DNA of 34,262 nucleotides from Octopus sinensis (lineage: Eukaryota): the NCBI RefSeq assembly GCF_006345805.1, contig NW_021831956.1, forward strand, positions 1 to 34,262, read 5' to 3'. Position 1 is the stretch's first letter. Every line of letters begins with the position of its first letter. Both the position numbers and the translations under genes were made by a program. This document shows, piece after piece, positions 5,237-33,531 of the stretch. The notes beneath the pieces are model-generated. The model was not told where the DNA came from. It saw only the letters and a list, made by a program, of their open reading frames with translations, and ran no database searches.

Positions 5237-5442
5237 TCAACTGAAGTCTGATAATAAACATTCAAGCGCCGTGAAACATTCCGTTTCTAAAAGAGCTTCT
5301 TTTAATGTTTGAGGTGTACGTTTCGCTGGATCGCAACCTCGAAACCATTTTAGAAGCATCTGAAAGCCTTGTTCCATAATGTTATAAGGATTGTCGTGCT
5401 TGATGATTTCCAGGTCATCTTGTGTAATTTCTAATTCCCTTC
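5237..5442 (-). CDS. Death domain last exon: [68 protein letters not shown]
   Basis: Part of ORF 5237-5569; acceptor gtatcttttgcag at 5443; death-domain pattern EQ...ML..W...T...L..AL; TGA at 5239-5237. Confidence 0.92.
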
Positions 5443-8400
5443 CTGCAAAAGATACAATAAAAAATAATTGCAAAAGCATTAAATGATAATATAAAACCTG
5501 TGAACAGTAAATTATAGATATGACAAAGAAATTATGTGAATAGACGAATGAGAAATACTGAAGAAACACGGAAAATAGAAGACATTGTTATCTGTTTCTA
5601 AAGATTTTGAGAAAAATAAGAAACAAGTTGAAATAAAAGCTGGAATTGGAGAAAACATTTAAAGATCGAATAAAATTGAAAGTTACACATGAGAAATCTT
5701 CTGGTAAACAACTGGCAGGAGAAGTGTTTGTGTGGGCAGCAGTATACGAAAAGCTCAAGAATCAACAAAGACTACCAATAGTTACACCATTTCATCTATC
5801 CATTCATTTTCTTTGCCCTCTCTTCATAGGAGGGTTATAAGGGTAGAGTCCTCAGGCACCTCCTTCATACGATTCTATCTAAAGTAAGCTTGATTAGAAA
5901 TTCTGAGAGAATTTCCAAGCACAACCAATTGAACCTATGGGTATTATGCAACAATTTATTCTTGGTTTAGCCCCAGGTCTTCTGTCAGTTGGCTCAGCTC
6001 GATGAATCCCTCTTTTGATTCTTTCCTGAGACATTTTAATCACATGCCGGTAGTATTGGAGCAGCTGTGACCTCTCAATGCAGAGAAGCAGTCGTTTGAC
6101 CTGGAGAGACACCCAAATTTCGAAGCTGCACGCGTTACTCCAGAGACTCCTCAGAGGAACTCAATTTCAGTCGTTTTGATAACATCCCATATTCAAAGAC
6201 TGAAATAGTCACCTGTGATGTGGTCCCTCCTATGATTAGTAAATAATAAAAGATTATCAAAATTCAGAAATATCTCGAAAGTGGGATATGACTTCAACGG
6301 CACAAAGTAAAAATATAACACTGTTAGGTACATATCACATATTATAGAAGATACCAGCTGAAAAGTTAGTTTTGAAATACTGACTCCTAAAAAGGAATTC
6401 CTTCACTGGTTGAAGGCCACAATTTCAAAAGATACTCATACAGGAGAGGCCCAAGAGTAAACAAAGCAATGAGAAAGGTTTTAGTTTGTAAGCAATAACA
6501 GAACATCTACACCATACACTTACAACACTTGGGTCCTGAAAGAATCCCTGCATCCTCAAACATCTACATCATCTGGAAAGTTATCACAATTTATATGCAG
6601 GGGAGAGAAAAGGGGTTAATAGGAATTCTATATGGTTTATCTAATGTACGCAATAGGTGCAGTGGTATCACAGGCAAGTTTACAGGGAGGACGGGTTAGG
6701 GTTGGGGAAGGACTTTTTAAGTAGCAGATACACGGGATTAGTTTGTAGTAAGAACAAGTATGAAAGACATATAGTTTCTCTAACCTAAGAGACATAATTA
6801 GAAGTGGGTGGGTGGGGGTCTATTCTCAAAGTGCAGTACTTTGAGGAAAAATGGGATGGAAAATGTACAGGGAACTGTTATGTCTACTGGCAACTAAGGG
6901 ATTCCGTCTCCAAATGAAGGAGAGATTGCATGAGGCGTATTTGTAAAGTGCAATGTTGTATTTAATGTAGAGGATGCATGAAAACTGGCAAGAAATGAGG
7001 TGAGCATACATCACTAGAAGTGTAATGTTAATGTGTTGAAAACCTGGGGTTAGGGAAAACTGGGTCCCAGAAGAATCTGTGATAGTGCACAATATAGTAT
7101 AGATTTAGAATGGATATGGTAAATGAAATTTGGATAAAGAAGTGCCTGGAATTCAAGTGAAAGAAAACAAGCGATTAAACCTGACAAACAACCACAACGA
7201 CTGTGGGAGAAGTCATCTGACACATACAAACTTGGAGAAATGAACGTAATATGCTGATTATATTGGACTGGTGTTAATGGATTGATTTTTACCTCAGTAT
7301 ATGACTGGTACATTTTGTATGACTGCCAGAGAGATAACAAATTGGCAATGTCACAGATGATGTCCTCTCTTAATTTAGATAAATCATTTCTATCAGCTGA
7401 CTGAGGGGATAATGTTACGACCTCTTGAGTCAGGGGTGAAAGGTTCAAATCTAGTCCCCCAACACAGCTCAATGTCCTGGTAAAGACATCTCTCTTCTGG
7501 TTCAGTCTACGAACCACGATAGGGAGGTAAAGATATTGCTGTAAATAATAGGAATATTGTATAAATGATATTTTATGTTGTTAAACTTTCAGACAAGAGG
7601 AAATGGGATACTGTGATGTTCATGCCTTTCCAGTAAAGGAGAGTGAAATGATTTCAATTGATAAACAAAATCAAGTTGAGTTTGAATTTTCGGATGAAAC
7701 GTGAGTTTCATTAATTTACAATACTGAGTTCAATCCAGCCATGGACACAGGCAGCAATGGGGGACTGTTTTCTATAGAGACTGGCACTATATATTGACCA
7801 GGGACTAAAGAACTACAATCAAAGAGAACACAGCATGTCACACATAATGCAAACTCTCGTGTTTAAAAAGGTTGCTTTCGATAATGTGGTCCTCTTCATC
7901 CAAGAGAAAGAAGGATGTTACATCTGGAAACCTTCCCTCTTAACTCTGCCAGATTAAAACAGATATCTGCCTCAGCAACAACAACAATAACAACCAATCT
8001 GTGAACTTTCCAAAAACGTAAACAAACAAAAACATTGTCATTAACTCACCTGTTTACTCTTTAACACCATTATTCTTGAGTCCCCTTTTACAAACGACAA
8101 TATTAACTCGACTGTATCTTCTAATTCAAATATTTTACACCTGTGCTGACCTCGGTGGATATTTTATGAAATTTCAGTGATATCTTTACTATATAGCTAA
8201 ACTTTCAATTGGAAACTAGGAATGGAATCTGTTCTCAGTCAAAAGTTTAACTGAAAGCAAAATTTATAGAAATCAATTAGGTATTTTATACTCACCAAGT
8301 TGCTGCCATTTACCCGCCAACTTTTTGGACACCCGATGTAGATGCTTCACCTCTAGCGTTAGTATATCTGAAATAAATGTTTCCACATTTTACATTTCAT

Positions 8401-10231
8401 AGTATAATTTCCCTATCTCTGTTAATGGTTTATATCTTATTATTGTAAGACATTCCTATCATCAATGGCCAACTGCTGACCACTATAGGTTTCGTCGACA
8501 GTTTTATACTTTCTACAGTGGTCCTATATAATGGCTCAATATTTAGGTCCATAACAAAATAGACTGATCTTCCTAAACCTCCTTTTTCTATTAAGACAAC
8601 CTTCTTGATCTATCAATGTTGCATTCATCTCATTTAATTATCACATGTTAACACCTTTTATTTCTTTTCTTTTTTTATATCTGTGCTAAACCTATGAGAT
8701 AGCACTGTTCCCTCATCAGTAGACTTCAGTAATCCAGTGGTAACCAAGTTGGTCATAAATGCTCTTGACACAAACTCATATCATACCACTTGAAGCAGGA
8801 TCAACACACACCTGTTTTCTTTGTTTTAACCTTTAATTTTATCTATGCAACTCACAGTTCACCAGAATTTCATCTGATTCATAAAATATTTTAAGACTCC
8901 TTAATGAAACAGTTTTCATTCCAGATGAGCAATGATTATTTTTACAGAGGTGAAACAGAAAGTGATAACAAGTGTCCTAAAACACTGTATACTTGCACAA
9001 AACATCTTTAACAACATGCAAATGTTTATACACAGATTATTGCAAAAGAAAAATATTTGAAAAGGTACAAAAGAAGTGATATTCAAGAATATATAAACAA
9101 GATGGTGATATAGATCAAACTTCAAGCACCAAATCTTGTTTTTGCCCAGAAGTTTTGACTTGGCAAATGCTTATTGCCCATCCTCGGTTTCTGCAATGAC
9201 ATCAATGCCTCTACTCTTATTAGACAATGTGGGATTGTAGCATCGTCCTCAAATTATTTTTTTACTTTTGGCATAGTTTCTCCTACTATTTTGAACGTTA
9301 CCTGTTTCTGTTGACCTTTGACATATGTCAGACTGCATCAAGTATTTGCTTAGACAGCATTCTAGACCGAGTAATTAGTCCAACCAGTCTATCCAGAACT
9401 AATTGCATAAACATTTGATCTCTTCTTCTTATTTTTATGTCATCCATAAATGCCTTCTTAAGTGATTTCCCTTGAGTAATTTCTTCTGATAAATCTGCTA
9501 ATCCCCATAAAAGCATCCCCATAACAAGCAAAACCAAGTAACGGATATTGTGCAATCTACAGCTATTCTAGTTCCAATGTTGGGCACATGAAAATCTTTT
9601 TCTAGTGCTTTTGCCACATTAAAATGTACTCAGGAACCTTTATAAAGTGGTTGGTGTTAAGAAAGGCATACTACCATAGAAAAGGTGGAATGTTTCAGGG
9701 AGATGTGTTTCTCAAGCAATCGAGGTGGACAGTAATTCTGAATAAGGACATGGATAGTGACTACCCAGCCAATTCGATAATGAAGACACTATAATCGATT
9801 GCATTGTATCTTGCACCCAATCTTGAGGAGAGAGAAAGAGAGCAATTGTCTCAGCAGCAGACCAAAGTCTCCTACTGGGATAAACACAACGTTTAGGGGA
9901 TGTAATGATAGATTTACTATCAGTGAAAAAAAGAGAGTGTGTTCACACTTGTAACAATTTTCAACTTAGTCACCTTGTTAAAAAAGACCGACAACAACAA
10001 CAACAACAACAACAATTAGGAAACTTATTAAATTGTACAACAAACAAGCTCTCTCATTATCTCATCTGGTTTTACCTTTAAACGACAAATTGTTTTCCTT
10101 TATTCCAAAGAGAATATGAAGTCTGTTGTGTTTTCTAATTTAGCCATTTTACCAACAGCGCCAACACTGCTGGACATTTTATTAAATTTCAAATCAGTAA
10201 TATCAATGGACTTGTAAATGCATCCATAGTA

Positions 10232-10292
<61 letters not shown>

Positions 10293-13200
10293 GACAATAT
10301 GGCAAATATTCCTCTTAAGGGGAGCGAACCGCTTCTCAGTCATTCACACAAATTATGTAGTTTAGGTGGAGGTAAAATTTGTAGAAGTCAATTAGATATA
10401 GTTATTTTATACTCACCAAGTGGCTGAGCCTCTGTCTGGGATGCATTGTCTTCAACCTTTGGATGCACTGAAATAAACATTTCCAAGTTTTATACTTCAC
10501 AGTAAAACTTCTTTAACTTTATGTATAATTCTGTATTTTATTATTGTGAGACATTCATGTAATCAATGGTCAACTGGTGAGTAATATGGCTTTGGTCAGC
10601 ATTTTTATACTCTCTACCATGGGACCGTGTAATAACCCAATATATAGGTCTACAACTAAATAGACTGACCTTCCTCAATCTCCGCTCACTATTAAGACAT
10701 CCTACATAATCTAACAATATTGCACTTCTCTCATTTAATAATCACTTGTTAACACTGCTAATCTCTTTCTTATATTTAATCTAATCTATGACATGATTGT
10801 CCTCTCATCTCTAGACTTCACTAATCAACATTCTTCTCGTTTTCTACTTAATTCCTTGACAACCAAATTGGTCCTCAAAAGTCGGACCATGACACATCGT
10901 TTCAGGTAGGATAGACATAACCCCGCTCTCTTTTTAAAGGTCACTGTTGGCAATCTTTAATTTTAACTGACCACATCACACTTCCCCAGAATATCATCTG
11001 ATTAAGGAAATATTTGAAAATATTTCAATGTCATTCATTTTCCTTAATAAGCGACGTTTTTCAGGTGAGCAATGATTAGTTCTACAACGGTGGAGAGGTA
11101 AGCGATAACAGGTATCCTGAAACACTGTACTTTTGTACAAAACCTACTTAACTACAAAATAACTGTTCATGTACACATTATTACAAAGGGGTTATATCCA
11201 AATTGAGAACTAACAATTTATTCGGAAGAATATATAAACAAAATCGAACTGGAAACATGAAATTTTGCATTTTTTTAGTAGTTTTGAATTATCAGTTGTT
11301 TTCTGTCCATCTTCAGCTTTGCCATGGTCTCACTACCCCAGTATGTATCAGTCAACAAGATAACGTACCACCAAATTTAACTTTTGGTTTGTCTTTAACT
11401 TTTGGCATGAGTTCTCCTGCCGTTCGTAACTTCCCTTGCTCCAGCTGACCTCTCACAAATTATAGACTGCAATACTTATTTGTTTGAAACCACATTCTTG
11501 ACTAAGTACTAACTCTATGGAGTCTACTAACCAAAACTATTTGCATATCCTTTTAGTCTCTTGTTAGTATTGTTATGTCAGCCATGAATATCTTTCCGTT
11601 GAGCAATTTCTTCTGGACATTCTGTTAATCTAATTAGCATAACTATAAAGATCACCAACCAACTGATATTGCGCAACATTCAGCTATTCCAGATCCAGAA
11701 CCTGGCAGTCTTTTGTGAAATTTTATCCTATAAAACACATTTTGAAACTGTTATAGCATCTCATCATCAGATCCTTAATCTCCTCCCATTTATGAAAGAA
11801 ATTCCTTGTTTCCATCAACAATGTGTGTGGTACAGAACAATAAGCATTAGCCAGATGAAGCCATACTACATCCGAATCTCTTTTATTCTTCTTTGCTTTT
11901 TATATGGCATCCCAGATTTAAAATGCATGTTCTACACACACAGACATTCTCCGAATTCTAGTCTTCTGGACATTTTCAGTCATATAACCATTATTTTGCT
12001 GACATGTAGCTGATTTCATGGCAAGTACACCCATGTAAATCTAGCCATTCAAGATTGAAATCGGCTTCAATTGGCCACTTAGTTCTGCATTAACTTACTT
12101 TGATGAATACAATCCTTTTGTCTTGCATCATTCATCAGTCAGTCCACCTTTATCCCACAACTCCCTAAATAGTAATTAATGCTTATAACACCTGGGCACA
12201 ACATTTGTACACGTTCTATGGTACACAATCACCTCCCGTTGCAATCTCGGTTCTTGCCTTCTTCACTAAGCTTTATACTTGTTTCTTGCTGAAATCGCAA
12301 AGCTGAAATGTTTGATTACTGGTTTCATTGGACATTTCAAACCAAACATGAGCAGGAATGTTAGTACCGTATGAAGGGTTCTTAAGGAGCTGCAATTTAA
12401 AGTGTTCACTATCCTTTCTTCTTTCAACCCGTCCGATGTCTCTTTGAATGTATTTGATTGTATTGTATCATACAGCCTCTATGAAGTTTGAAAAAAGGGA
12501 AAGAGACAACGGTTTTCTGAGCAGCAAACCAACGTCTTCCACTTGAATAAATACAATGTTTATTGGATGCAATGATATATTTATTATCAGTGAAAAGCGA
12601 CAGGGTGTTCATATTTGGAACGCATTTCATTGTAAGTCTGCCAGATTATGAGAGATATCAGCTAAAATAACAACAATAACTTGTCAGTAAACATTTAAAA
12701 TGTATAAAACAAACAAAACCTTTGTCATTACCTCACCTGTTAAACCACAACATATATAATTTGGCTGTTCCAAAAGAGAACCTGAAATCTATTTCGCTTC
12801 TAATTTATCCATTTCACCAACCGTGCTAACCTGATTGGATACTTTATTAAATGTCAATAATATCGATATGTTTAATATGATTAGTTTACTGCTAAAACCT
12901 CCCATTCAAAAGTAAGAATGGAAGCTGATCTTTATCATTCTGATATCAAAATAGTTCAGCAGGGGATAAACCTTACAGAAATCAATCAAGTGCTGTCATT
13001 TTATACTCACCAACAGGTTCTTCCTGTGTCTGTGTTTCTTTGTCTTTGAATGTTCGATTCTCTGAAATAAATATTTCCAAGTTTCAAACTATATAGAAAA
13101 ATGTCTTTATATTTATTAATAATCTATATTTTATTATCAGAGATTACTGTGATCGATGATCAACTGTTGATGACAATGATTTTGGTTAGAATGTTTATAG

Positions 13201-16200
13201 TTTGAACAGGATTACCATGTAATAGTTTAATATTTACAGTCTTCCAAAATGTCTTTTATCTCTTGAGACATTCTACATAATCTAACAACTGTGTCATTAT
13301 TTCATTTAATTATCACTTGATAACACCATTCTTTTATTAGGTTTGTCTTTCCTGTCTCATATCTGCACTAAACATATGACGTGAAATTGTGCCCTCACTT
13401 CTGCCCTTCTCTAACCAACATTATTCTCATCTTTGCTTAATTCCGATGGCAACCAGTTTGGTCATCAATGATCTTACCATAAACACATGGCAGACACTTC
13501 ACGTAGAATAAACCTGCTCACTTGATCTCCTTGTTAAACATTTTCATTCGTGTATCCAACATATTTTCAGGATTTTAACTTCGAAATATTTTAATCAGAT
13601 GCTGCCTGCTCCTCACCTAAAAGAGTGAAATTGTTATCGGCTGATATTCTTTTCATTAGAAGATCAGATCTTGAAGAAACAATGAAGCAGTGATGGGATC
13701 GTGTGCCAATTAATTTCACTGTTCTACTGTTTTCGTTTCGGACGTAAAAGAACATTATTCCTGGAATGCTTGCACATACTCAGCAATACACCTTGGAATC
13801 CGTGAGAAAATGTCTTTCTGTGGCTACTTGTTGACTTTTTTGCACATGACATGGAGAAAAATGCCACTCTGCTGCAAGTCCTTGATCATTCTGATGATGA
13901 CAGAGATTTGTTTGGTGTCTCTAGTTCTTGTATTGGTCGTAGGCACCATCACTGAAGTACAGGAGATGGTTTATGAATGGAAGTTCTGTCTTTATATGCG
14001 ATATCACTCTCGAAATAAAAGCATGCACAATGGTGTTGTCATGTTTCAAACAATCAGATATGACACAGACTGGAGTGCATTGTGGGTTTGAACCAGTCTT
14101 ATAGTAGATCGCGAATGGATGAATATTTGCCTGGGATTTGTTCCGATGAAACCCTTGCAGGGCGTCCTGTACTACAAAGCTATAATTTTCTGTAAAGTCC
14201 AACAATACTATTGCTTCACTTGATGTCAGGTCATCTTTTTGATGATTAAGGAAATAAGATCGGGCCTCTGCTATGAAATGATGTTGTTGTGGAGATTCAA
14301 ACACACTTTCAGCGGTTTGAATGAAGGCATTCACTGGGGAAGTGAGTCATAAAGGAGCTGACCAGTCCACATGTGCCAACTGTTTGTGCGTTAATAAACC
14401 TCCAAGTGAATAAAATACGTCTAATAAACGTTGTTCAAAAGGACAGGACTCACATAGGAGCAACATACAATCTCGATTGCTCACGGAAGAGACCATTTTG
14501 CCAAGCAAGTCTCTGTAGTCGTGACTACCAGGAATGGCAGCGGCGATACGTTTTGCATGTTGGTGATTCTCACAGACACATACTGAATGCGTGCCTGAGG
14601 TAGTAACTGGATCACACAGCATTTTGGTTGCAAGTCACAAAGAAGCGAATATTCCTCCGACTCATACAATTGTATTATCCGTTCATTTCAGTTGCAATTC
14701 ATAAAACTTTCAAAACTCTACCTTATTATATTCAGCGTTTTCCTTGTATTCCACACAAAACTTCTGAAGATTCACAAGCAATGGCTATTTTAGTCGGTGG
14801 ACTTGTAATCCGTTCTCAATTACAGTAACAATTTCCTTTTTAGCTGGACAAACACGTGAATATTCCTCCGATTCTGACGTCCCGGGACGTACCTTTCCTT
14901 GGGTCAGGATGAACCAAAATAGCCTCTTCTTTGCTCAGTTGCTGTGATTTCCGCACCATATGATCACTTAAATCAAAGGTTCCAGTAAATTATTTCCGTG
15001 ACCAAATTACTGGCACAAAGGTTAATAATGCGCATTGGTGCCTCTTCGAAATTTATATTTAATGTCGCCAAAATACGGAGTAAAATAGAATGCAAAATGC
15101 TTACCATACATTTCTGTATTGATGGATGTAAATATTTTGGATTTAGAGGACTATTGCGCATACACACCAAGAGTGTGCGGGTGAATTCACTTGGGGGCTT
15201 TCTCAATCTAAGCGTATCTCCCAAGATCCCGGTGTCCTGTTATTGCCATTGTGAGGCCAATGTTTGAAGGTCATACTTCATCACCTCATCCCATGTCTTC
15301 CTGGGTCTACCTCTTCTACAGGTTCCTTCTACCGTGAGGGAGTGGCACTTCATCACACAGCTGTCTTCATTCATACGTAACACATGACCATACCAGCACA
15401 GTCGCCTCACACGTACACCACATTTGATGCTTCTTATGCCCAACTTTGTCGTGATTGCACACTGACATTACACATCCAGCGGATCATACTAACTTCATTT
15501 CTTTCAAGCCTACGCATGTTCTCAGCATCCATGGCCCATGTTTCCCTGCCCTGTAACATGGCTGTTCGCACACATGCATCATGCAGTCTACCTTTCACCC
15601 TGAGTGATAGACCTTTAGTTGCCAGCAGAGGTAGGAGCTCCCTGAACTTTGCCCAGGCTATTCTTACTCTAGTCTCTACACACGCAGAGCAATCACACTC
15701 ACTACAGACTTGAACCCCTAGGTAGCAGAAGCTATTAACTACTTCTAGTTTCTTCCCCTGGCATGTGATGGAATCTGTTTTCTGTACACTTTCAGTGTTT
15801 ATTGCCCCAGAGCAGCTGCCACACACAAAAACTATTTTCCCGGTTAACTTTCTTTGATATTGCGGCACCTTTTATGTGTCCATAGCTTCCTCCGGGTACA
15901 TCGTGTGGAGTTTCTACCCTCTCCATTTTTACAGATAGAGCAGGGCCATCTACCTGAAATGGGTTGTGATTTGACAGCCTTCCTACTAACAAGGACTTTG
16001 GTTTTGACTAGGGTTTTGACTAAGGCCCTTCAATTCTAGACTTTGCTCCCACACCCTTAACTTTGTCTCTAGTTCTGGCAGTGACTTGTCTGTAAGAGCA
16101 AGGTCATCAGCATAAAGAGGCTCCCAGGGGCAGAGTGCCTTGAATTCCTCTTTTATTGTCTGGAGGACTATAATGAATAGGAAAGGGCTGAGGACGGATC

Positions 16201-19200
16201 CTGGGTGAACCCTGATGTGTATTTGTAAAATGGAATGTTTCACAGAGTATAGAGGATGTATGAAAACTGTTAAGAAATGAAGTGAGCATACTTCAGAAGA
16301 AGTGTAATATTAATGTGCTGAAGTCCCGGAGCAGAGATGAGCTGGAAGCAAAACTAGGGTTTAGAAGATTCAGAGATAGCGCACAAGAGACGAGATGGCA
16401 TAGAAATGGGAGGAGTATGGAGGATTTAAAAAATCAGGATAAAGAAGTGCCAGAAGATCCAAATTGAAGGAAATAAGAAGTTGAACCTGACAAAGGATAA
16501 CAACAGCTGTGGGAGTAGTCTAATTTGAATGCAACAATCAAGTCAGAACTAAAACCACAGGCGAAACACTCAGAAAATTGTGCCTCTTTTAGTTTTAATA
16601 TCATCTAAAATCTAACAAGTGTGAGAAAAACAATTACTTTATGGATGGTAAATGTTGTTCAAACAATGTAATAAGTGTATATTATATATAGTTACAAACA
16701 AGGATTTGTGAGATCAAGTCACACAGGGAACTCATATTTAATTCCTATCTTTATATTTTATGTCAACACCAATATTTTGTTTAAATGTGAATATATGTTC
16801 ACCGTTCAATACTAAATTTAATATTTAATCAACGTTAATGATCATTATACGTATAATCTTAGAGATTTGATTTTTAATTCTTTTAATTTATAACAATGTT
16901 ATTCTGTGGTTTGTTGCCAGTTCCGCCTGCCTGGTTCCCTGTCCCGGGGGAAAGTAAAAAGCACCCACCACACTCTCGGAGTGGTTGGCGTTAGGAATGG
17001 CATACATATGTGGAAACCTTGCCAGATCACATTGGAGCCTGACGCAGCCTACTGCCTTGCCAGTGAAATCGTCCGACCCATGCTACTATAAAAACGGACG
17101 TTAAACGATGATGATGATGATGATGATGATAATGATGATGATGATGATGATGAGTTCCGTGACCAAATGACAAAATTAACTCTATTGTGTCTTCTAATTT
17201 GAACATTATTACCAACAGCATTAACCTCAATGGGTATTTCATAAACTCATAGTAAATCGATATCTTTAATTCAATTATTATACAGATAATCGTTCAATTG
17301 GAAAATAGGAATGGAAGCTGTTTTCAGTTATTCTTTCAAGCACAATATAGTCGGGGGAAGTAAACCTTACAGAAATCAATTGGGAACTATTATTTTATAC
17401 TCACCAGTTTCCTGAGATGCAACCTCTAATTCCTGACATGTAGCCTCTGTTTGTACACACCTGTCTTCAAACTTTCGAGCCTCTGAAATAAATATTTCCA
17501 AGTTTTACATTTAATAATAAAATATCTGTTTCTTTATTTTATTAAACTATATTGTTATTGCGAGTCATTCAATTCCTGTCGTTACTGGTCAAATGTTGAC
17601 CATTATGGTTTTGGTCAATATTTCTGTGCTTTCTACAGTGGCCCCATGTAATAGCCCAATATGTCCACAATAAAACAGACTAACATTTCTAAATCCCCCC
17701 TCTCTCTCTCTAAAAACACATTAAATATTCTAACAATGTTGCAATTATCTCATTTAATTAACACTTGATGACAGTTTTCTCTTAGCATTGTCTTTCTTTT
17801 CTTATAACTGTGCCAAATCTATGGCATGGCACAGTCCTCTCATCTCTAGAATTCACTAATCAACATTCCTCTCTAATTAAGTAAATCTGAGGCCATTAAG
17901 ACATGTTCTTTATGTGCATACCCTCCACCCCGCACACAATCTGTCCCCTAAAAAACATCTCCACAAGCCAAATTCCATACACCCTTCTCCAACATGATCC
18001 CTAACAAGATATAAAATGTAAGGTGAGGGTACACGATGTCCATACGACAAAATAAGTTTACATTTCAGACATACAAATGTAAGAGAGTTAATGAATTATA
18101 GCTTATTAATTATCATGATAATTGGGTATATATGTAATACAATGGCACTGTGCTTGACGGTGCAATACTAGATATCAATATAGATTGTATATAATCTGAG
18201 TAAAGAACATATAACCTTCATTACTATGAATATGATTGTGTCTCAGCACAGCTAATATTATGGTAGTTCCATGAGCAAACGAAGAAAGATATAACCAAGT
18301 CCACTGCCAAATACTAATGATTAATTCACTTCTTGGTCAAATAACAATGACTATCTTTCATTAAATAATTTGAACGCAACAATCAAGACCAAAGGGTGAA
18401 ACACTCAGAAAACTGTGCCTCTTTTAGCATTAATATCATCTAAAATCTAACAAGTGTGAGAAAAAGAATGACTATATGGATGGTAAATGTTGTTCAAACA
18501 ATGTAATAAGTGTATATTATATATAGTTACAAACAGAGATTTGTGTATTCAAGTCATATTCAATTTCTGTTTCTATATTTTGTATAAGCACCAATATTTT
18601 ATTTAAATATAAACAGATGTTCACGGTTCAATATTTAATTTAACATTTAATAAAATTAAAATTAAGTTCATGATGAATATTTTTATACAGAGTTAATATT
18701 TAATTATAATTTTCTAATTTGCAACTACAAAATGTATTCTAACCAGAGACATTCAGGGTACACAACCCCAGAAAATACAACATATTACGACAGACATCTG
18801 GCTACATAACAACATCAAGAATAACCTATCAGAAAACTTACGAAAAATCTTAGTAGAAAAACAACCAATTATCTTATTAACTCACGAGTTTACACCTAAA
18901 AAAATACATTATAGTTCCCTCTTCCAGAAGACAATATTAACTCTATTGTGGCATTTAATTTATCCATTTGACCAAACATGTTAACCATGACTTTATGAAA
19001 TTTCAGTAATATTTTTAATACAATTACTTTAGAGCTAACCTTTCAAATGGAAATTAGAAATGGGATTTGTTCTCCACCATTCTAATACGCAAAATAGCTG
19101 AGGTGAATGTAAAATCTATAGAAATTAATTAAGATCTCTAATTTTAAACTCATCAACTGTCTCTGCCACAGTCTGCACTCCCTTCTCATCAAACTTTGGA

Positions 19201-21220
19201 CTCTCTGAAATATGTGTTTGCAAGTTTTATATTTATTTATAGCACAATTTCTTCATATTTATTAATAATCTATATTTTATTATTGAGAGACATTCATATC
19301 ATCATTATGATCACCAGCGATCATAATGCTTTTGGTCAATATTTTTATACTTTCAACAGTGGACCCATGTAATAGCCAATATTTAGCTCCAAAACGAACT
19401 CTTGTTGACATTTGCAAATTTCCTCTCTCTGTTAAGATATCCTACATAATCTAACAATGCTATAATTATATCACTTAATTATCACCTAATAACAGTTTAT
19501 CTGTAGGATTTGGTTTCCTTGCTTATATCTATGCCAAATCTATTGCATTTTCAAAACCCTGATCTTCACTAACAACCTGTTTGATTCCAGTGTCAACAAA
19601 TTTAGTCATCAAAGATATAACAACAAACACATGTCACAACCACTTCAAGAAGGAGAAACATACACCTAATCTCTTTGTTAAACATTGTTGCTGATAATCT
19701 TTAATTTTAACTTCACAGTCCAACAGAATGCCATCTTATTCAGGATATATTTGAAGGTTTCATGATCTGGTTGGAACGTGACACTCAAGTCAGAACCAAA
19801 ACCAAACTTTGAGCGATGAACAAGAATGTGTCTCTGTTAGCCTTGGTATCACCCAAAGACCAACACAGCAACATGGAGTTGTGTGTTGAAGTCTCAAACA
19901 CTGGTGACACATACTTTTACTCCTTTATAATATTCTACTAATTTTAATACTTTACCAAAGATGACACTGATGTCCTTGTAAGTACTGTTGTATTTACTTA
20001 TCTTCTAATAACTCATAATTAATCATAGAGTTGATGGAGATTTATTGATACTTCAGTTACTCATTAATTATTTGCAGAATCCTCCATTATCTTTATGTTG
20101 CAGACTACAACCCTCTTGAAGTGTGACATGTTTCCTACTTGGATAAGGTCAATGTTTAGTGGATGTAGTGTGAGAGATATACTATTACAGAGAACAGACA
20201 CTAGGAACACCTTTTATCATAAATCTGCCAGATTATGTCAGACCTCTGTCTACATAACAACATGAAGTATATCATTCTATACAATAAGGGCAATGGGACA
20301 AGCAGGACAAACAGACAGATCAGCAAAGGAAATTCTTACCAACTCGACCTCTGCTTGTTACAGGTTTCAAACACCTCAGGCATCGTTTAAGTGGAACTTT
20401 TGAACATTCTTCACATGTCAGAAGGTGTTCACAGGGATGAACTTTTGTTGTGGCCTCTTTATTTCTGCACAACAAACATCTGTGGACAAAACAGAAACAT
20501 CCAATCAATAACATTCATTTATAACAAATATTATATTATTTACATGTTCGGAATAGAGAGTATTATAAGATACATCAGTAACTACCAAGAGTACAGCAGA
20601 AACTCTTCTTTAAACATTTACATACATTCAGCATTTTGTGTAGTTAAATGACGCAGAAACACACACACACTCATACAAGTATACACACTCATGCATACAT
20701 ACATTGATAAATGTTTGTCTTGACCCTGATACATCATAGAAATTGGTTGACACACAGTGAACTGCATATATTCCAGAAATATATTTCACTTCTAACGTCG
20801 AACTCATTTCTTCTGAACAAATATATCTACACAGGTTTCTTTATAGACACATACTTTATTATATGCACTTTATTATATACATCCCTCCCGTCTCCACAGA
20901 TTAACAGATGAGGTGTCCAGTACTGAGCAGTGGCAGGAATAGCCCGAAACCAGACCTAGTCTTCTGGTCCTGTTGCTATAAGATGGTAGGGGCTTGATCC
21001 CCTGCTCGCAATTAATCGGATGCCCCTCTGCATCGTTAACTATCTAGAGGAGGTGTTCTCTTGGGATTAAACATTCACAGTAGCGTCCATTCGAACAGAT
21101 ACTCATGTTGGCGTGCCTACAAATATTACTTATATATATTTTCGTGCAACCCGTGCTAGCACGGAAAACGGATGTTAAACGATATGATGATGATGATATG
21201 ATATATATATCATATATATA

Positions 21221-21825: not shown

Positions 21826-23761
21826 AACATTCACATAAACGATTATTTGTAAAAGCAAAGAAAATCTTCCGAAGCTTGTCAATTGAAGAAAACAGATCAA
21901 TATTTATACAGTCCAAAAATCAATATCTATAAACAATAACTGAATTTCAACAGACAAAGAAGTTTTGTATATTCACTGAGGGGGAAATGTGTCTGCTTCT
22001 TAAGTAGCTAATACAGAGAGATGTATGGCAAAGAAATTGCCAAATCTTATAAAATACGGGAGTCAAAGGCGACTAAAACACCTAGTAATGGTATATGTGT
22101 TACTTGAATTATTTACGTTTCCTGGCAGTTTTTTCTCTATGAAGATATGTGGCAATATTCCATCAGTATTTGCAGAAATATAATATATACACTGTTGGTG
22201 TGTGTTTGTAGGTTATTTTTCTACGAAATCATTCTTAATATTGACTGATTCGGGCATAGAAGAGTGAGAAAAAGATGTTGGTAGACAGATAAATTCCACT
22301 TAATCCTAAGTAACAGTTTCAAAATGGAATTCATTCACTTCATTATTTAGATCTATATTTTCCTATTGATCACAAATCTTTAAAATAGGGAACGAAGAGA
22401 GGTAGGTGTGGGTGGACAGTGAAGTATAACTGTTAACACTACGAATCATGTGAATGTAATCAAAATCGTGTTCTTTCTTTGATCTCCTGAGAACTGCATA
22501 TTGTTTATTGTGTGGCCTTTGTCAAAAACACTAGCGACAGTATAATGTATTGGTAGAATTAAAACGAAATAAACATATAAACATGGTTATATACAAAATA
22601 GAAAATGTACTGGTTTATCTTTTCCATTGCCAGGAAATACTTACTGTGGTGGTGAAAATGTTTCTAATTTTTTTCTCAAATTTGGGTCCTTAATGAGATC
22701 GAATGGTGTGTTATATTTGTTGTTTCTATGGTGAAAGTCAGCTCCCTGGCTGGCGAGATATTTAGCAGCAACTACACCAGAGAGCATTTCATCCTTTTTC
22801 AGGTTAAGGGCAGTGCAGCACTACAAATAATGAAATATAAAATGATGACAATATTACACAAATATTCAAAATAAATGCCCCTAATTACACAAAAGTTCAT
22901 CTAAATTTACTCATAGCTTGTTTATCCACTAATTAAAGCAATTACAAAGTATTGAGTTCCTACATATTCTTTGATTGAGTCCATTTCCTATTTTCATGTT
23001 TTTACTTTATTTTCAACACTGAGACACCCTCTAAATATATTGTCATTACATTGAGTAGGACAAACCGTATTGATTAACATCAAGCTTATTGATAATTAAT
23101 GAGTAAATATTTACTTGTAAATCACAAATATCACAATATATTCAATAGAAAAGTCAGAAATAGGAAGAACAAACCAAAAAGAACCTATCTATATAATTGG
23201 TTTGATAAAGGCGACTATGTAGCCATAAGAAAGAGTATTGTATATATAAATATAACACAACATGAGAAGAAAGAACATAAGTTATATCAGAAACAAAAAC
23301 ACTTATAACATAACACAGTCAATACCACACAAACATAACCAAACATATCAATAATGTTTCCATAATTAAGCAAGAAGCATTTTTGAATGATGACGGTAAA
23401 GTAAAGGAAGCAGGAATTAGTGTCAAGTCAGAAGAGTAATGGAGGAGTATTTTTAATCACGGACAAGTGAATTTTGGAAGAGGCGACTTGCAATTCTACC
23501 AGATAGATGGAAGAGCATTGTAGAAAATGAAGGAGAATATGTTTTAGATTAACAGAAAAAAGTACTTTGTTTATCTTAATTTTGAAAAATATAAGAATTA
23601 TAAAAAACTGCTTCATTTATGAGATGACAGCAAAAAGTCCAGTAGTATTAAAGTCCATACTGTTGATGACATCAGATAGCCGAATACAGTAAACGGGCTT
23701 TAAACAGCATTTTAGAAGATATATACTCAAACTCAAAATCATTACTTGTGTGTGTTTGTCT

Positions 23762-24414: not shown

Positions 24415-25114
24415 ATACAGACACATACAGACACACACACACACAGACACACACGCATGTATATACACAAACAATTTAAAAACTTACTTCGTTTAGTAAA
24501 TCCATGGGTGCATCCTCGGAATTAAACACTTCTGTTTCCATGGCTAGGTGCAAACAGCTGTTACCTTCACCATCAACAGCATTTATGTTTGCACCCAGGG
24601 CTATTAACAGGTGTGTCATTCCGAGGTGACCCCGGGAAACGGCTTCAAGCAATGGTGTCATTTTCTTTTTGTTCTTAATATCCAACTGAACAGAACCCTT
24701 TGTGGAAGTAAAAATAGAAAATGAAAATTTACATGAAAATCAGGATGGATATCAATGTCTTCTACTGTATACTTGATCAAACTTATCATGTACATTTGAT
24801 GTTTGTCCGTAAAATCAACCTTCGTAAGATCCTCTAGATGTTGCTATGAGAATGTGTTCTAGACAGGATAAAGATGTCCTAAATAGATTGTTTCAGCTTA
24901 ATCTACCTTTCTTCCTAACTATAGTAAGTTTTAGGGGAGCTGAACACGAGTGAACACATGATTAACAGATCAAGACTAGTAAAGAAGAATTAAAATTTCT
25001 AAAGTATACTTTTGATGTTGCTATAATTAATAAGAGGTTCATAAAACTGTTGAGGTGGTTAGTGTCCACCACCATGAAATTAATGCACACACACATACAC
25101 AGAGACACACACAA

Positions 25115-25153
<39 letters not shown>

Positions 25154-27228
25154 TTTATATACATTACTGTTGGATATATAAATATATATGTTGAATGAGG
25201 AATATGTAAAATGAAGTTCACGAGAAAATTTATTCATCACAACAATTGGTTTGGCCCATCTTGCATCGATTCCTTGTGGGTGGGAGAGATCTCGGTATCG
25301 CTTGGTATGTTGTTGTTGTCAAGCCAACAACCTCCTTGCAACAACATGCCAAGCGAAACCGAGAATATTTAGTGAGGTTTCTTCTGTAAAACAAGACACC
25401 AGATGAGATGCATATGCACCGGAGGATGCAACACATCCAATTGTACAGTATCCAACTCACAAGGGTCCGATGCAAAATGGGTCAATACTCCATTTCCCAA
25501 TCCCCCATTTGTAATAAAACTCAAAAAACCGTGAAATTTCTGAGGTAGACTAAGTGACAATTATATCATAACGTGTGTGTGTAATTGTGTGTAGACATAC
25601 ATACATACATACATACATAATACACACACACATACACACACACACATATACATACATATATACATACATACATACATAAACTGTTCACAGTTGAGGGAAT
25701 TAGCTGTCCAGCGGATGTTGACATAAAGTGAAATATAGAATATCTGGAAATAAACTGAATAATGACATACTTACGTTTATATGTTTTGTTTGTAGAAAAG
25801 ATAAATCCGGAGAAGAAGCATACTCTAAGATGTAGAGCAGTGTATATTTTAAAACTGGGGAAGGCCGGTTTCCGGTATTACCCTTTTTTTCCGGTCCAAA
25901 AAGGATTTAGCTTCATGGCGTATCATTAGACCCCAAAACCTGTTGTCCTAAGACCTCTTCCAAATATGGAGGGTGGAAAAGCCTTTCACCTCATACGCCT
26001 AATCCCGTCCAATAGCTTTTCCAGCTGCATACGCGTGTATAGTTCGTTGGATGACGTGGGGATGTTATTGCTGGAGTATCCGAGGTCAAATTCTTTCATA
26101 TTTATGGGAGACCCGTGGTTTCAGTGAATATGTAGAAATGCTTCAATGGTGAGATATTTAACAGAAACCACATGGTCACTGGGATAATCTCTTGCTAGGG
26201 AGCTGAAAAGGATCGTTTGCAGAAGAAGTAAATCCCAGGCTTTTCCCCTTCCATATTTTGAAGGGGTCTTAGGCCAACAGGGTCTTACGAAATGGTACAA
26301 AGCTAAACCCTTTATGAATGGGAAACCCTGGGTAATCCCATAAACCACCCCAATTTTTAATATACATACATACATACATATGTATATGTATATATATATA
26401 TATATATAAGTGTATATGCATGTATGTATATTTACTGCTTCCTTTTTGATATCTTACTAAATCTCCTTCTCTCTTCTATAAAAAACTGTTTTGTAAATTA
26501 TTGTCTTCCATACATTGATATTTTGAAAATAAAATTCTGTTCTTGTATATGTATATTGCATAGAAGAATGGATGTAAACATGATATTCTATGAACTGAGG
26601 TGCTTGTCATTTATACCTGTTTTACTTTGTAAATTGTACGATGGCACTGTATGATTTATAACCTATACACTAATGCAGACATGTAAAAGGATTTATCATA
26701 CACAAAAATTTCTGTGAAACGATGTAAATGGAGAAAGAAATATATTCATCTTATAATTTCTTACTTTATATGTATATATATATGTGTATGTGTGTATAAA
26801 TATATACATATTTCTACACATAGACACATACACACACACACATACAGACTTCATCGTGTGTGTATGTATGTATATATATATGAGTATTCATCTTGTATGT
26901 GTTTGCGTATACGTGTGTGTATGTGTTATATGTGTGTGTGAATGTCTTTTTGTCTTGACATCTGTGTGATAGTTGTAAATGAGTGCCACTGTCATATAAG
27001 CAGGGTCTATTATTTCCAACATTCTGCAGGATCATGTCTAGTTCTTGGCAAATGTTAGCTTCCTTAAAAAGAGGAGGAGAAGGTTGGCGATAGGGAGAGC
27101 ATCCAGCTGCAGAAATTCTGCCTCAATATAATCTATCTGAGCCAAGCAAGCATGATAAAGTTGATTCTGTGTGTGTATATATATACATATATACATACAT
27201 ACACACATACATACATACATATTTATAT

Positions 27229-27325
<97 letters not shown>

Positions 27326-27364
27326 GTATATATATATATATAAATGTATATAATATATAAATAT

Positions 27365-27398
<34 letters not shown>

Positions 27399-30120
27399 AA
27401 CAGAAATGGTGGTGCACACCCATACATATATACATGGTTGTAGTGTAAGAAGCTTTTTTCCCAGACATACACGGTTCCACGTTGAATCCCTGTGCATTGA
27501 AACTGAGGCAAGAATAATTTACTCTTACCTAGGGCTAAAAAAATCTTGTTAGTGGATTTGGTAAATGAAAACTGAAAGTAGCTTCATAACAGGTGTCTAT
27601 GTGTGTGCCTATGTATGTGTGTGTTAGTGAGTGTTTTTGTATGTGTGTGGTGTGTGTAGTGGTTCAGTAAAGAGGCTGAGAGGATAAGTGATATGCTTAA
27701 AATAATAAAAGTACTGGGATCGATAAGTTTGACTAAAAATTCGATGATGCCCCAGCATGGCCGTAGTCAAATGCCTAAAACAATTAATATATATATATGT
27801 ATATATATATACATACACATATATATATATGTATATATATATATATACATGATATCTGTTATATTTTAGTTCATCCCATAATGACCTTGTTTCATTTGAC
27901 CATTATATGTATTATTATTGTATTATTATCAGTGGTGGTGGTCAGCCGGACTGTCAACACCGCTAATATCAACATCAACATGATCAATATCAAGGGATTT
28001 GTAGTACATGTGATTGAATCTATACCCATTATTTTTCTGGTACCTTGATAATATTTATATTATACAGATCAATAAAATGCTGGAGAGTGTATATAATATG
28101 TATTTATTAACTAACCTGGTTCAGCAATAGAGACACAACACCATTGCGTTGGCTGAAAGTAATAGATAAGGAAAGAAAAACATGAAAAGAAAACAAACAT
28201 CACACAGCTTGAGATAATAGCTATTAGGTCATTAAAGAAAACAAATGTAATTAGGTCACAATAACTTAATTACAGCAATTATTACGCATATACTCACACA
28301 CATATGTATTTATTCAATACACACTCTACACAGTAGAACAATAATTTATACACGCCTGTGTAAACCCAGAAATGTAAAAACTGGAAAATACTGCTAAGAA
28401 TTCTGACAGCTTATATAAACATGAAATTTAGGAAGGAAAGAAGGGCTACAGGTAATCATATGAACCCCAGGACATTACTGGTATTGTATTTTATCAACCT
28501 TGCAAAGATGGAAGAAGTTGACCTTGGCAGGATTTGAACTCTGAACGTAAAGAATCGTAAATAAAATAACACAATTTATTTCCTCTAAAAGTAATAAGAA
28601 ACAAGAACTGGAGAAATGAAGGAAGACAGTTTATTAAAGGAACCCCTGGGTATTACTGGTACATATTATATTGACCCCAGAGTGATAGTAAATATTCTGG
28701 TAGGATTTGAACATGGAACATAAAAGAGACAAATGTAAATACTGTAAGGGAATGATTCTGTATTTAGCCCAGGGTCGGAGTAAATAGGGAAGCTACAAAG
28801 GAGAGAGAGTGAGGAAGAAAGAGAGAGAGAGAGAGAAAGTAGTTCTAAATGGGATGAAAAGAAGAAGAGAGAGGATTTGAACCTGTGACGTTGAGGAAAT
28901 GGAGAACGAGATGAAGTAAAGTTTCCAGTCAGGCAACAACAATAACAATTATGGTGATGATTAATTAATAAAGTAGATAACAGTGTTATTTCAGTGCGAA
29001 AGAGAGAAGAAAGACAATGACCCCGTGGTGGGATTATGACATGAATGACTGAATGAAAAAGAAACAAACATTATTGAAAACATAAAAGAAACAGATTTGG
29101 ATATTCCAGATCCAATGGGGACTTACCCCCGAACTGCCTCATGCAGTGGTGTGTCTCCAGCGTTGTCCATCACATTGACATCGATGCCATTGTGACCCAA
29201 CAATAGGCCGACTGTGTGTGTGTGTCCCCATGTACAGGCCCAGTGCAGCGGTGTTAGACCATCTTTATTTCGAGGATTCACCTGATAAAGAAAAGAATAA
29301 AAACATTAAAAATGGTGTCTGAAAGGGGAGTCGGGTGGCGAAGAATTAAAAGAAAAACTCACAGAAAAAGAGATGAGAAGGAATGAAATTAATTAAACAG
29401 GTGGAATGACTGGGGTGGGGAGTGGTTAATGGAGATTTCTATTGTATATACACACACGCGTATACACACTTGCATATGTACATATAAATATATTTATACA
29501 CACACACACAAACACCGCTTATAGGATGAATAACTCAATAAATAAACACATAGAGCAGCAAAATGTGTGTGTGTGTGTGTGTGCATATATATATGTGTGT
29601 GTTCGCGTGTGTGTGTGTTCATAGTTACATTTATTCTTTTATTCTTTAATTTCTTTCAGTCATGTGAGTGTGGCCATGCTGGAGCACTGTCATTGGTCGA
29701 GCAAATCGACCCCAATAAGCCTAGTACTTATTTTATTAGTTTCTTTTGCAGAACTGCTTGGTTATGGGGACGTAAACACACCAGCATCGGTTGTCAAGCG
29801 ATTTTGGGGAACAAACACAGACACACAAACACACGCACGTACACACAGACACACATAACACACCCACACATACACAAACTCATATGTATATATATGTACA
29901 CACACACACACACACACACGTATATATATATATATATATATAGATTTATACATATTTATATATATATACATACGACGAGCTTCTTTCAGTCTCCATCTAC
30001 CAAATCCTGGGGCTGTAGCAGAAGACACTTGTACATTGTGCCATGCAGTGAAAATGAACCGGGAACCATGTGGTTGGTAAGCAAGTTACTTACCACACAG
30101 CCACACCTGCGCCTCTCTCT

Positions 30121-30166
<46 letters not shown>

Positions 30167-30438
30167 GTGTGTGTATGTATGTAAATAGATCTTTTTTACT
30201 CTTTTACTTGTTTCCATCATTTGACTGTGGCCATGCTGGAGTACCCCATTAGTCGAGGAAATTGCCACCAGGACTTATTATTGTAAGTCTAGTACTTATT
30301 CTATCGATCTCTTTGCCGAACCGCTAAGTTACGGGAGCGTAAGCACACCAGCATCGGTTGTCAAGCGATGGTGGGGGAAAAACACAAACAAATGCATATA
30401 TACAATATATATATAATAATAATATATATATATATATA

Positions 30439-30500
<62 letters not shown>

Positions 30501-30640
30501 TTCGTCTACCAAATCGACACACAAGACTTTAGTCGGCCTGAGTCTATGGTAGAAAACAATAACCGAAGTTACCACGTAGGGGACTGAACCGGAACCATCT
30601 GGTTTGTAAGCAAGCTACTTACCACACAGCCTTCCTGTGC

Positions 30641-30680
<40 letters not shown>

Positions 30681-30687
30681 CTATATA

Positions 30688-30764
<77 letters not shown>

Positions 30765-32445
30765 CTATATATATATAATATATATAGTAGATAACTAAGT
30801 AGATAACTAAGAGTTCTCACACTACAGTTATCTTTTTCCTTATATCTGCTTCAGTTTTTTGAGAACAGGGAAATGAATAGTACTTATACGCTGCTTAATT
30901 GAGGCTTTATTTAATTTCAAACTCATAATTTTGAATTCTTAATTTTAAATCTTAATGTAATTTTTATTTTATTTTAATTCCTAACTTAATCTAATTTAGT
31001 AGCATAACTCTAATAAAATAAATGAGATGACTATAGCCCCATACTTCTATTTCAAAATTAAATAAATAAGGCTACCCCCTCGGTGATATATGATTATCTT
31101 CATTATGATAGACAATCCCCTAACACCTGTAAATGATCTTCTAGATTTGACCTGTAGTCCGTCAATGTATGAATAATAACGGCAACTCCTTAAGACATAA
31201 AATGAATAAATTAAATAAGTAAGTTTTATTGATTTTGATAAGATTATACTTAGATTTTCCTAATGTATTTTCTTTGATTTTAGCATCTGACCCCTAAAAC
31301 CCTGACTGTGTGTTATCTCTTTAGATTCTCTTTAAATTCATAGCTGATTTCAACAGCAATAAATTAGCTGTTTTACTGGCCAAAGAATAATATTCCCCTA
31401 GTTCCTAGATGCCCTGTAATTAAAACAGACTTGCCGTCACTAATCTGCTGTATAACTAGAACCCTCTTTTATTTTATTTTTCCCTTTTTCCCCTATTTCT
31501 TTCTTTCTCTTTCTCTTTTTTCTGTTTCTTCTTCTTATCTCTTTTTCTTTTCTCTTCTCTTTAGTCCCCTTTCCCCCCCCTTTTTTTGCTCCCTCCTCCT
31601 TTATTTTCTCTTTTCTTCATTCCCTTCCTTTCTATCTTGGCCTCTCTAGAAAGCCCTTCAGCCTTAAAAGTTAAATAGCTACAGCCTCTTGTAAATAGCA
31701 GTATGTGATTAATGTGGCAAATACCTAATCATATAACAAGTTTTGATACCTACCTCATTGTGTTCAACCATTGATAAATTATCGCCTGTGAATATGAAAT
31801 TCCTCTTCATTTCTCTGGAACTTACATCTACACATTGGAAATTGTGCATCTATACAAAAGGATTAATTCACCCTCTCTGTAATGCTAATAAGCAGGAATT
31901 GAGACCACCTCGTTGTGATTAAAAATGGATAAATTTGTCTTCTGTGAGTATGTAATCCCTCATCATATCTCTGGAAATTCATATGTGCTCTATGGATTAG
32001 GTCACCTTCTCTGTGATGCTATTAGAAATTTTTAAATTCTGTGATAAGATGGTACATCATCTTTAAAGAACTTTAATGAACTTTGGAAATCTGTTTACGT
32101 TACTTAATTATCTACATTACTTCATGAGTATAGCCTCAACCACTAGGATGTCTAGAGAACTCACATGTATTTTAGCTGATGAGTACGGGACACGTTTATA
32201 TGATGTAATTTTTACAACTTTTAATAAAGCCTGTCCTTGTATGAACGATTGTACTAAAACCTATCCATTCTTGTTGCTTCTTCTCGCTTATAATCACCCC
32301 ACATTACTGTATTGTTAAAACAGTATAGTTTTTTGGTGCATCAGTTAGGTTACCTTCAAGTAAATTCATTTAAATTAACTTGAATCTTATTGCTTTTGTA
32401 TATATATAATATATAGATATATATATATATATCTATATATATATA

Positions 32446-32489
<44 letters not shown>

Positions 32490-32708
32490 ATGTTCCTCAT
32501 GAAGCTTTTAATATAAACATTTCTTAATGAAATTTTCTGAAAATCCATCCTATCCATGTCTTAATCAACAATTATTCTGGAGTTGCGATTGGTTTGAACA
32601 AAACAAATGCTTCGTTTTCTCAACATAATAGTCATCGAAAATCAATGATTTTCATTAAAAGTAGGAAACACCAGAAAGTTATGGGGAAAAAAAAACGTGG
32701 GCTCGGAA

Positions 32709-32768
<60 letters not shown>

Positions 32769-32844
32769 TATATATATTATATATATGGGTGGTGTGTGTG
32801 TGTTTGTGTATACATACTCATATATAGGTGTGCATACATATTTC

Positions 32845-32880
<36 letters not shown>

Positions 32881-33491: not shown

Positions 33492-33531
<40 letters not shown>

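Follow-up and report, generated by a model that had tools for sequence, protein, structure and literature searches.

Duplicated death-domain exons as the probable source of a variable disordered linker in an Octopus ankyrin–RING–death-domain family

Here we analysed a whole contig of 34,262 bp (NW_021831956.1, C8427; hereafter the window) from the genome of Octopus sinensis, which carries a gene with ankyrin repeats (ANK), a RING and a death domain (DD), and in which an array of very short exons separates the RING from the DD. The reading we favour, with a probability of about 0.6, is that this array consists of tandem, frame-neutral cassette micro-exons that encode a disordered spacer of variable copy number, leading from the RING to the DD in an ANK-RING-DD family expanded in Octopus. 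The units would have arisen by repeated unequal duplication of the first coding exon of the DD along with the adjoining ends of its introns, most copies would then have lost 21-27 nt and with them the LGxxW part of helix 1, and in the window gene three spliceable and annotated copies (B, C and D), next to a fourth one (A) with a dead GT donor, would together provide ~60 residues of disordered linker. Spacer length and sequence would vary between paralogues by duplication and loss and between isoforms by cassette splicing, and the spacer would determine how far the oligomerisation module formed by the DD can reach from the ubiquitin-ligase module. The original prediction, made from the letters of the window, had seen in the same exons an array of binding motifs for LC8 (DYNLL1); according to the spacer reading, the LC8-like xQT motifs would be inherited and modified remnants of helix 1 (LQD to VQT to TQT), and LC8 binding would be possible in some copies.

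The four units follow each other from A to D on the minus strand, which also carries all coding features given below, and encode peptides at 19167-19202 (A), 17445-17480 (B), 13024-13059 (C) and 10430-10465 (D), each in a short open frame that begins directly after AAACTTGGAAATATTTATTTCAG; the frames of B, C and D stop before G/GTGAGTATAAAAT (slash, splice point). The corresponding exons, at 19154..19204, 17405..17482, 13011..13061 and 10417..10467, measure 51, 78, 51 and 51 nt, are all multiples of three and all of phase 1-1, with two bases of a split codon first and one last. The acceptor 22-mer AACTTGGAAATATTTATTTCAG has four occurrences at up to three mismatches, against 0.00 expected, with 0-1 mismatches in B, C and D and three at the first DD exon (DD exon 1), and the donor 14-mer is matched at 14/14 positions at B, C, D and DD exon 1. 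Moreover, the units are homologous over ~600 bp, including ~300 bp of intron on each side, with a mean column identity of 67% in a MAFFT alignment that spans 10160..19500 (units at ~18900-19500, 17150-17780, 12750-13360 and 10160-10770). Because the homology reaches into the introns and the splice sites match, these units are paralogous duplicates and not chance open reading frames (ORFs), which bears out both the four paralogous exons recognised by the original prediction and its proposal that exon duplication, here of exon plus intron in tandem, was their source.

The RefSeq model of the contig, P0009, is a protein of 354 aa named "E3 ubiquitin-protein ligase MIB1-like" (Octopus sinensis), which aligns to the window at 98-100%. 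Between its C3HC4 RING and its DD, it includes exactly the exons B, C and D, all three of which have strong splice sites. The RING exon (20340..20479, residues 156-202 of P0009) ends in phase 1 (...GTT G/gtaaga) and matches zf-C3HC4_3 in Pfam with 27.2-29.4 bits (cut-off 27). It is followed by exon B, with both splice sites, at residues 203-228 (100%; split-codon residue E), exon C, which carries the canonical KETQT, at residues 229-245 (split-codon residue E), and exon D at residues 246-262 (100%; split-codon residue V). The DD itself is encoded by DD exon 1 (8296..8367, 72 nt, phase 1-1, residues 263-287, split-codon residue D), the putative parent type of the micro-exons, and by DD exon 2 (5237..5442, residues 287-354), which starts in phase 1 and contains the stop codon at 5237-5239; spliced together, both match Pfam Death (PF00531) with 27.7-28.4 bits (cut-off 22.6). 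The array is thus located, as had been proposed, between a RING and a DD that both exceed their Pfam cut-offs. With the RING exon ending and DD exon 2 beginning in phase 1, and cassettes of 51, 78, 51, 51 and 72 nt in phase 1-1 between them, any copy number keeps the reading frame.

The A-type unit is either a pseudo-exon or a non-canonical exon, which combines a good acceptor with the donor G/ATGAGTTT where G/GTGAGTAT is expected, i.e., AT in place of GT, and is missing from P0009. All complete RefSeq models examined leave out the A-type exons, the partial model P0029 alone reading through, into the intron, and the AT donor (in one case TT) is found in all eight A-type copies seen, comprising the one in the window and seven paralogous copies (L024-L030). 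Consequently, the assumption that all four motif exons are expressed agrees with the predicted RefSeq model for B, C and D, but not for A, which leaves at most three motifs. The 51 bases of the A-type are almost invariant, with a nucleotide diversity (pi) of 0.005 compared to 0.04 in the flanks, and all 50 intron windows vary more; this unit may serve as a last exon used alternatively, or may regulate splicing.

Investigating the relation of the array to the DD, we observed that the 150 nt flanking DD exon 1 share 70-76% identity with the flanks of A to D (z 23-38 upstream and 4-17 downstream). Between the bodies of the window's own DD exon 1 and of A to D, nucleotide similarity was not significant (z < 2), and exon-body homology is demonstrable only against other DD exon 1 types and via intermediates, e.g., exon A agrees with the DD exon 1 of a paralogue at 38/51 nt (z 6.2; 0/500 shuffles), and at the peptide level it shares 8/16 residues with SPVLDEKFLQDVAQNF, which is of the DD exon 1 type. 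Intermediates are preserved elsewhere in the genome, among them 78-nt B-type exons still containing '..ELG..', the 72-nt SPKFADKGVQTDLQLLEPTSEQS and the 72-nt SLNLEENRSHSTSKEVAVKQQQV, the latter located between an array and a true DD exon, and the 51-nt form corresponds to DD exon 1 minus 21 nt. On this alignment evidence, the micro-exons are tandem duplicates of the first coding exon of the DD with its flanking intron ends, and since the domain is ancient and intermediates have survived, we infer that the direction was from DD exon to micro-exon. The pattern acidic-K-x-V/L-Q-x-V-A-E of the micro-exons is already present in the exon for helix 1 of the DD; as E/D-K-x-V-Q-x-V-A-E was inherited from DD exon 1, its occurrence in four paralogues is no evidence of selection for LC8 binding.

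Beyond the window, a search of the genome (2.72 Gb, 13,516 contigs) with the pattern ATTTCAG-N45-84-GGTGAGTATAAAAT gave 235 matches compared to one in a reversed control, and its 51-nt version gave 100 matches compared to none, 97 of which are family members with an open frame. At least 235 such exons are present in the Octopus-expanded ANK-RING-DD family, with 0-8 per gene, in tandem arrays of 1-8 exons that have a period of either ~2 kb (the type of the window) or 154-166 bp. The feature is real and thus more extensive than originally described. In O. sinensis, O. vulgaris and O. bimaculoides, annotated proteins carry the exons between RING and DD. A dispersed repeat with chance ORFs was considered and rejected, because the copies are arranged in tandem within paralogous genes, have retained reading frame and splice sites, and are present in RefSeq proteins. 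In the annotated models that keep the DD, linkers comprise 11-124 aa with 0-3 QT anchors, many paralogues having no QT anchor or no micro-exon at all, and two predicted isoforms of one paralogue gene, X2 (P0010) and X4 (P0011), differ by exactly one cassette. The combination of ANK, RING and Death was restricted to Octopus among the best 120 profile hits, and our literature searches yielded no description of the ANK-RING-DD family or the micro-exon array, nor of LC8 together with RING or death-domain ligases.

The short-period arrays contain up to eight successive 51-nt exons with introns of only ~103-115 nt and were found at C27:8164673-8165238, C27:10124129-10124528, C27:15807859-15808886, C11515:88-1480, C10645:29208-30101 and C10766:24759-25490. 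Many of these copies encode CP[KR]C[KR]EK..VKTV, and so a CPxC every 17 residues, without a QT anchor; these CPxC repeats might form zinc knuckles between adjacent repeats.

The linker encoded by exons B to D is predicted to be disordered. In the AlphaFold2 model of P0009, residues 205-264 show a pLDDT of 27-31 and no stable secondary structure, the ankyrin part of the same model being mostly at 83-96, the RING at 79-87 and the DD, with six helices, at ~90 (RING and DD overall 79-93). In addition, residues 319-388 of the paralogue P0001 reach only 25-29 in AlphaFold2, and with values below 50 in both proteins the disordered linker assumed by the original prediction is supported by the structure models. 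We infer that the array functions mainly as a flexible spacer.

LC8 (DYNLL1) binds short strands of the form [K/R]x[T/V/S]QT, and tandem QT motifs in disordered linkers can form multivalent dimerising scaffolds. The duplicated exons might accordingly be a multivalent array of LC8/DYNLL motifs, in which LC8 dimers would join two linkers and thereby dimerise or stiffen the RING-DD protein, with exon number equalling valency; we regard this as possible but unlikely. The window copies have Q-T in 4/4 cases (A VQT, B VQT, C TQT, D SQT), E/D/D/D at position -4 and K/R/K/N at -3, so that the acidic residue at -4 and the K or R at -3 in three out of four, as described originally, are indeed there. Published binding rules (PMC6607443) start from a TQT-like anchor. 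Position -4 should be polar or D, with nothing hydrophobic larger than Ala, -3 should be large or positively charged, -2 should not be a bulky aromatic, and +2 should be P, D or E rather than hydrophobic. B and C comply with these flank rules, D combines D at -4 with a small N at -3, in A position +2 is occupied by V, and the residues at +2 in B, C and D are E, Q and E; VQT and SQT anchors occur among validated binders, i.e., MAST1, SON, ZFPM1, BSN and WWC3 (PMC6607443, Table S4). From the 79 binders and 32 non-binders of the same table we built a log-odds matrix for 8-mers, a home-made approximation and not LC8Pred, on which exon C (KDKETQTQ) scored 17.0, at the 77th percentile of binders and with no non-binder as high, and exon B (EDRCVQTE) 13.1, at the 35th percentile and with flanks above 94% of non-binders. 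Exon D (EDNASQTE) was marginal with 10.7 (18th percentile of binders), and the non-spliced exon A (DEKGVQTV) was poor with 8.1 (9th percentile).

The genome also encodes genes of the Dynein_light (LC8) family PF01221, with 22 matches, at least nine of which are complete single-ORF copies of 85-148 bits (e.g., C25:12066054-12066305, C8597:280489-280740 and C8459:191318-194076); these could represent an expansion or retrocopies of the LC8 hub protein. Exon C furthermore fits the ELM-style pattern [^P].[KR].TQT, and the claim that B and especially C follow published LC8 motif rules is upheld by both scores and flanks. Judged by sequence, the LC8 resemblance is real for two of the three annotated exons (C and B), LC8 docking by these two being a reasonable proposal, and binding of LC8 in vitro by at least one of the peptides appears likely. 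Other motif readings considered by eye, i.e., a TRAF2-type [PSAT]x[QE]E (TCQE in B, TQEE in C) and a caspase-like xExD, were too degenerate to be weighed.

It had also been stated that Q-T is kept while the other positions drift, which is true of the four window copies but not of the family genome-wide. There, [TVIS]QT is found in 40 out of 97 spliceable 51-nt exons, the triplets being VKT (17), VQT (16), TQT (15), VQA (13), AQA (6), IQT (6), SQT (3), SQR (3) and others, with VKT, VQA, AQA, SQR or VKK often in place of Q-T, and the residue retained most strongly is E14 (92/97), a glutamate that follows the T at a distance of three. In 41 B-type copies, Q is changed to K in seven and T to K, R or I in seven, 10/41 copies having lost Q or T, which are among the most variable residues, and E5, D6, R7, E12, A13, C15 and Q16 never change. 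The core is lost in four out of 19 C-type units, which were found by DNA similarity (IQK, MQT, THT, MKT), and the commonest C-type variant, EVKETQTL, is hydrophobic at -4 and +2, with flanks at the 1st percentile of binders; peptides identical to that of micro-exon C are encoded at C27:18135092 and on C4053. Whole paralogue arrays with VKT, VQA or AQA score ~0 or below on the LC8 matrix.

Exon bodies diverge as fast as introns or faster, as the pi values are 0.10 for the C-type exon compared to 0.03-0.06 for its introns and 0.073 compared to 0.063 for the B-type, the latter calculated from 11 copies (41 B-type exon sequences were used for the residues), and the near-invariant splice regions, partly an ascertainment effect of selecting copies by splice pattern, were not relied on. 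Between pairs of 51-nt exons with at least 80% identity, the ratio of nonsynonymous to synonymous changes per site (pN/pS, Nei-Gojobori) was 0.93 overall, 1.20 for the anchor codons and 0.87 for the rest, and in the non-CPK subfamily, which holds the exon types of the window gene, 0.43 for the whole exon, with 0.73 at the anchor and 0.38 at the remaining codons; like the pi values, these ratios stem from non-independent paralogues and very short exons and are indicative only. With these statistics all pointing the same way, though indicative, we found no sign of selection on the Q-T resemblance to LC8 sites, and conservation of the anchor across paralogues is contradicted by its presence in 40/97 exons, its loss in 10/41, an anchor pN/pS at or above that of the rest and the many paralogues without it. 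On such comparisons, it is not the xQT motifs that selection has maintained in the family as a whole. In addition, many TQT peptides do not bind (PMC6607443), and exon A is not spliced. The evolutionary pattern does not favour a multivalent LC8 function maintained by selection in the window gene, and such a function seems rather improbable to us. Equally doubtful is the narrower version in which, within the subfamily of the window gene, truncated DD-exon copies would have become an LC8 motif array (LQD to VQT to TQT) whose cassette number tunes the dimerisation of a RING-DD ligase.

The divergence values also bear on a further explanation, namely that the micro-exons are tolerated by-products of segmental duplication, included via inherited splice sites and frame, with length and sequence both unselected. 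This would agree with a pN/pS of ~0.93 over all 51-nt exons, with exons diverging at least as much as introns, with a copy number of 0-8 and some members lacking the exons, and with the persistence of the dead copy A in all paralogues examined. However, the splice signals are the best-kept blocks of these old duplicates, with the donor at 14/14 in B, C, D and DD exon 1 and the acceptor at 0-1 mismatches in B, C and D compared to 66-67% identity overall, 97 out of 100 pattern matches keep an open frame, this type of array already exists in O. bimaculoides, and pN/pS is 0.43 in the subfamily of the window, so that we consider neutral passengers very unlikely.

Several points weigh against the spacer reading itself. 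C and B score like true LC8 binders on the training-set matrix, the 8-mer SDKGVQTV is identical at 7/8 positions to the validated human ZFPM1 motif SDKGVQTP, an ancestral-looking SDK[GA]VQTV copy being found in both O. bimaculoides and O. sinensis, and a disordered linker with three motifs at even spacing is the setting in which multivalent LC8 clients typically bind. Furthermore, the pN/pS of 0.43 in the non-CPK subfamily indicates some constraint on the peptide, which a pure length spacer does not obviously need, the divergence statistics have the indicative character described above, the copies were partly ascertained via intact splice sites, and the RefSeq models are predictions. As a separate observation, the micro-exon peptide [CG]PKLSDK[GA]VQTVAE.. 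is common to P0046 (O. bimaculoides) and P0036 (O. sinensis, exon at C29:12215508).

Tandem exon duplication giving rise to arrays of frame-neutral cassette exons is a general phenomenon, e.g., in the repeat exons of large modular proteins. The octopus array resembles such cases in its homologous exon-plus-intron units, their symmetric phase and a number that varies between paralogues and isoforms, but it differs in that the exon copied was the first one of a folded DD, that the copies no longer contain the segment required for folding and code for disorder instead, and that in some arrays the introns are only ~103-115 nt long. Compared to multivalent LC8 clients such as ASCIZ/ATMIN, there are likewise several xQT motifs ~17-26 residues apart in a region predicted to be disordered, with flanks in B and C that follow published preferences; in contrast, each octopus motif lies on its own duplicated, DD-derived micro-exon, and the anchors are not conserved in the family. 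For ASCIZ, LC8 binding is reported from experiments (PMC5963919, PMC10046861), whereas the octopus motifs are a resemblance in sequence. Exon C resembles dynein intermediate chain (Dync1i1, YSKETQTP) in its central KETQT, which is identical to that of this validated binder (PMC6607443, Table S4), yet its +2 residue is Q and not P, its context is a RING-death-domain protein, and the commonest variant EVKETQTL breaks the -4/+2 preferences.

With MIB1 and MIB2 the window gene shares ankyrin repeats followed by a C3HC4_3-type RING, but it has a single, non-C-terminal RING, followed by a DD, and Pfam detected no MIB/HERC2 or ZZ domain in P0009, P0001 (478 aa, Met start) or P0005, only Ank families, zf-C3HC4_3 and Death. 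The label of a MIB-like ligase, which had been applied to this gene, is therefore not sustained; by its domain content the gene is not a MIB orthologue, and "MIB-like" is an accident of automatic naming caused by ankyrin plus RING. The best matches of the DD among solved structures are the DDs of ankyrin-3 (E 2.8e-5) and RIPK1 (E 8.3e-5), at low similarity, and the ANK-RING-linker-DD architecture sets the octopus proteins apart from these, being seen in Octopus only among the top 120 profile hits.

The remaining exons of the gene encode the ankyrin part. An exon at 29126..29305 (Pfam Ank_4 59.5 bits, Ank 51 bits) contains the start Met of P0009 at 29170, residues 1-15 mapping to 29170-29126 at 100% by tblastn, and further ANK-like ORFs are located upstream of it, towards the contig end. 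It is followed by an ankyrin-repeat exon at 24488..24700 (Ank_4 40.6 bits, residues 27-97) and by the last exon of the ankyrin region at 22644..22820 (residues 98-156, 100%), which ends with ...ETFSPPQ right before the RING. By eye, the ankyrin-RING part of the window gene is nearest to the paralogues on C27 and C10104 (P0004, P0008), and its DD is near-identical to those of the paralogues on C29 and C11317 (P0001, P0002); this mosaic suggests recombination or gene conversion inside the family.

Within the introns, a retroelement fragment at 15434..16309 (RVT_1 24.7 bits, below the cut-off of 29.6, in the ORF 15986-16309) lies outside the gene product and accounts for the greater length of the B-C intron, in which it sits. 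This intron comprises 4.3 kb and holds further long ORFs without a Pfam match at 13921-14346, 14347-14634 and 15434-15871; the ORFs in the region 13921-16309 are probably decayed mobile elements. The intron between the DD exons contains an open frame of 176 codons (7050-7580), for which no Pfam match was obtained and which is absent from the RefSeq model. Long simple repeats are located at ~10230-10300, 27100-27500, 30300-30800, 32400-32900 and 33340-34080; they comprise (TC)n just downstream of exon D, TA/TATG-rich tracts and a GAT/ATC-like tract near the contig end. Such repeats give rise to many of the spurious ORFs in the ORF list, e.g., the long poly-D, poly-H and poly-I frames of the GAT/ATC-like tract.

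Overall, the intact parent (72 nt), the intermediates (72 and 78 nt) and the derivatives (51 nt) persist in one genome and provide a stepwise view of how a disordered linker can be built from the exon of a folded domain, and the array illustrates clearly how, in nature, the duplication of an exon can generate intrinsic disorder together with candidate linear motifs. If LC8 binding were true for the subfamily of the window gene, it would represent a new class of LC8 clients and a case of motif birth, i.e., a multivalent LC8 scaffold derived from a folded-domain exon; if not, the array would be a caution that a motif common to paralogous repeats is no evidence of selection. For cephalopods, the fast-changing linker of this Octopus family may matter for the coupling of ubiquitin-ligase and death-domain modules.

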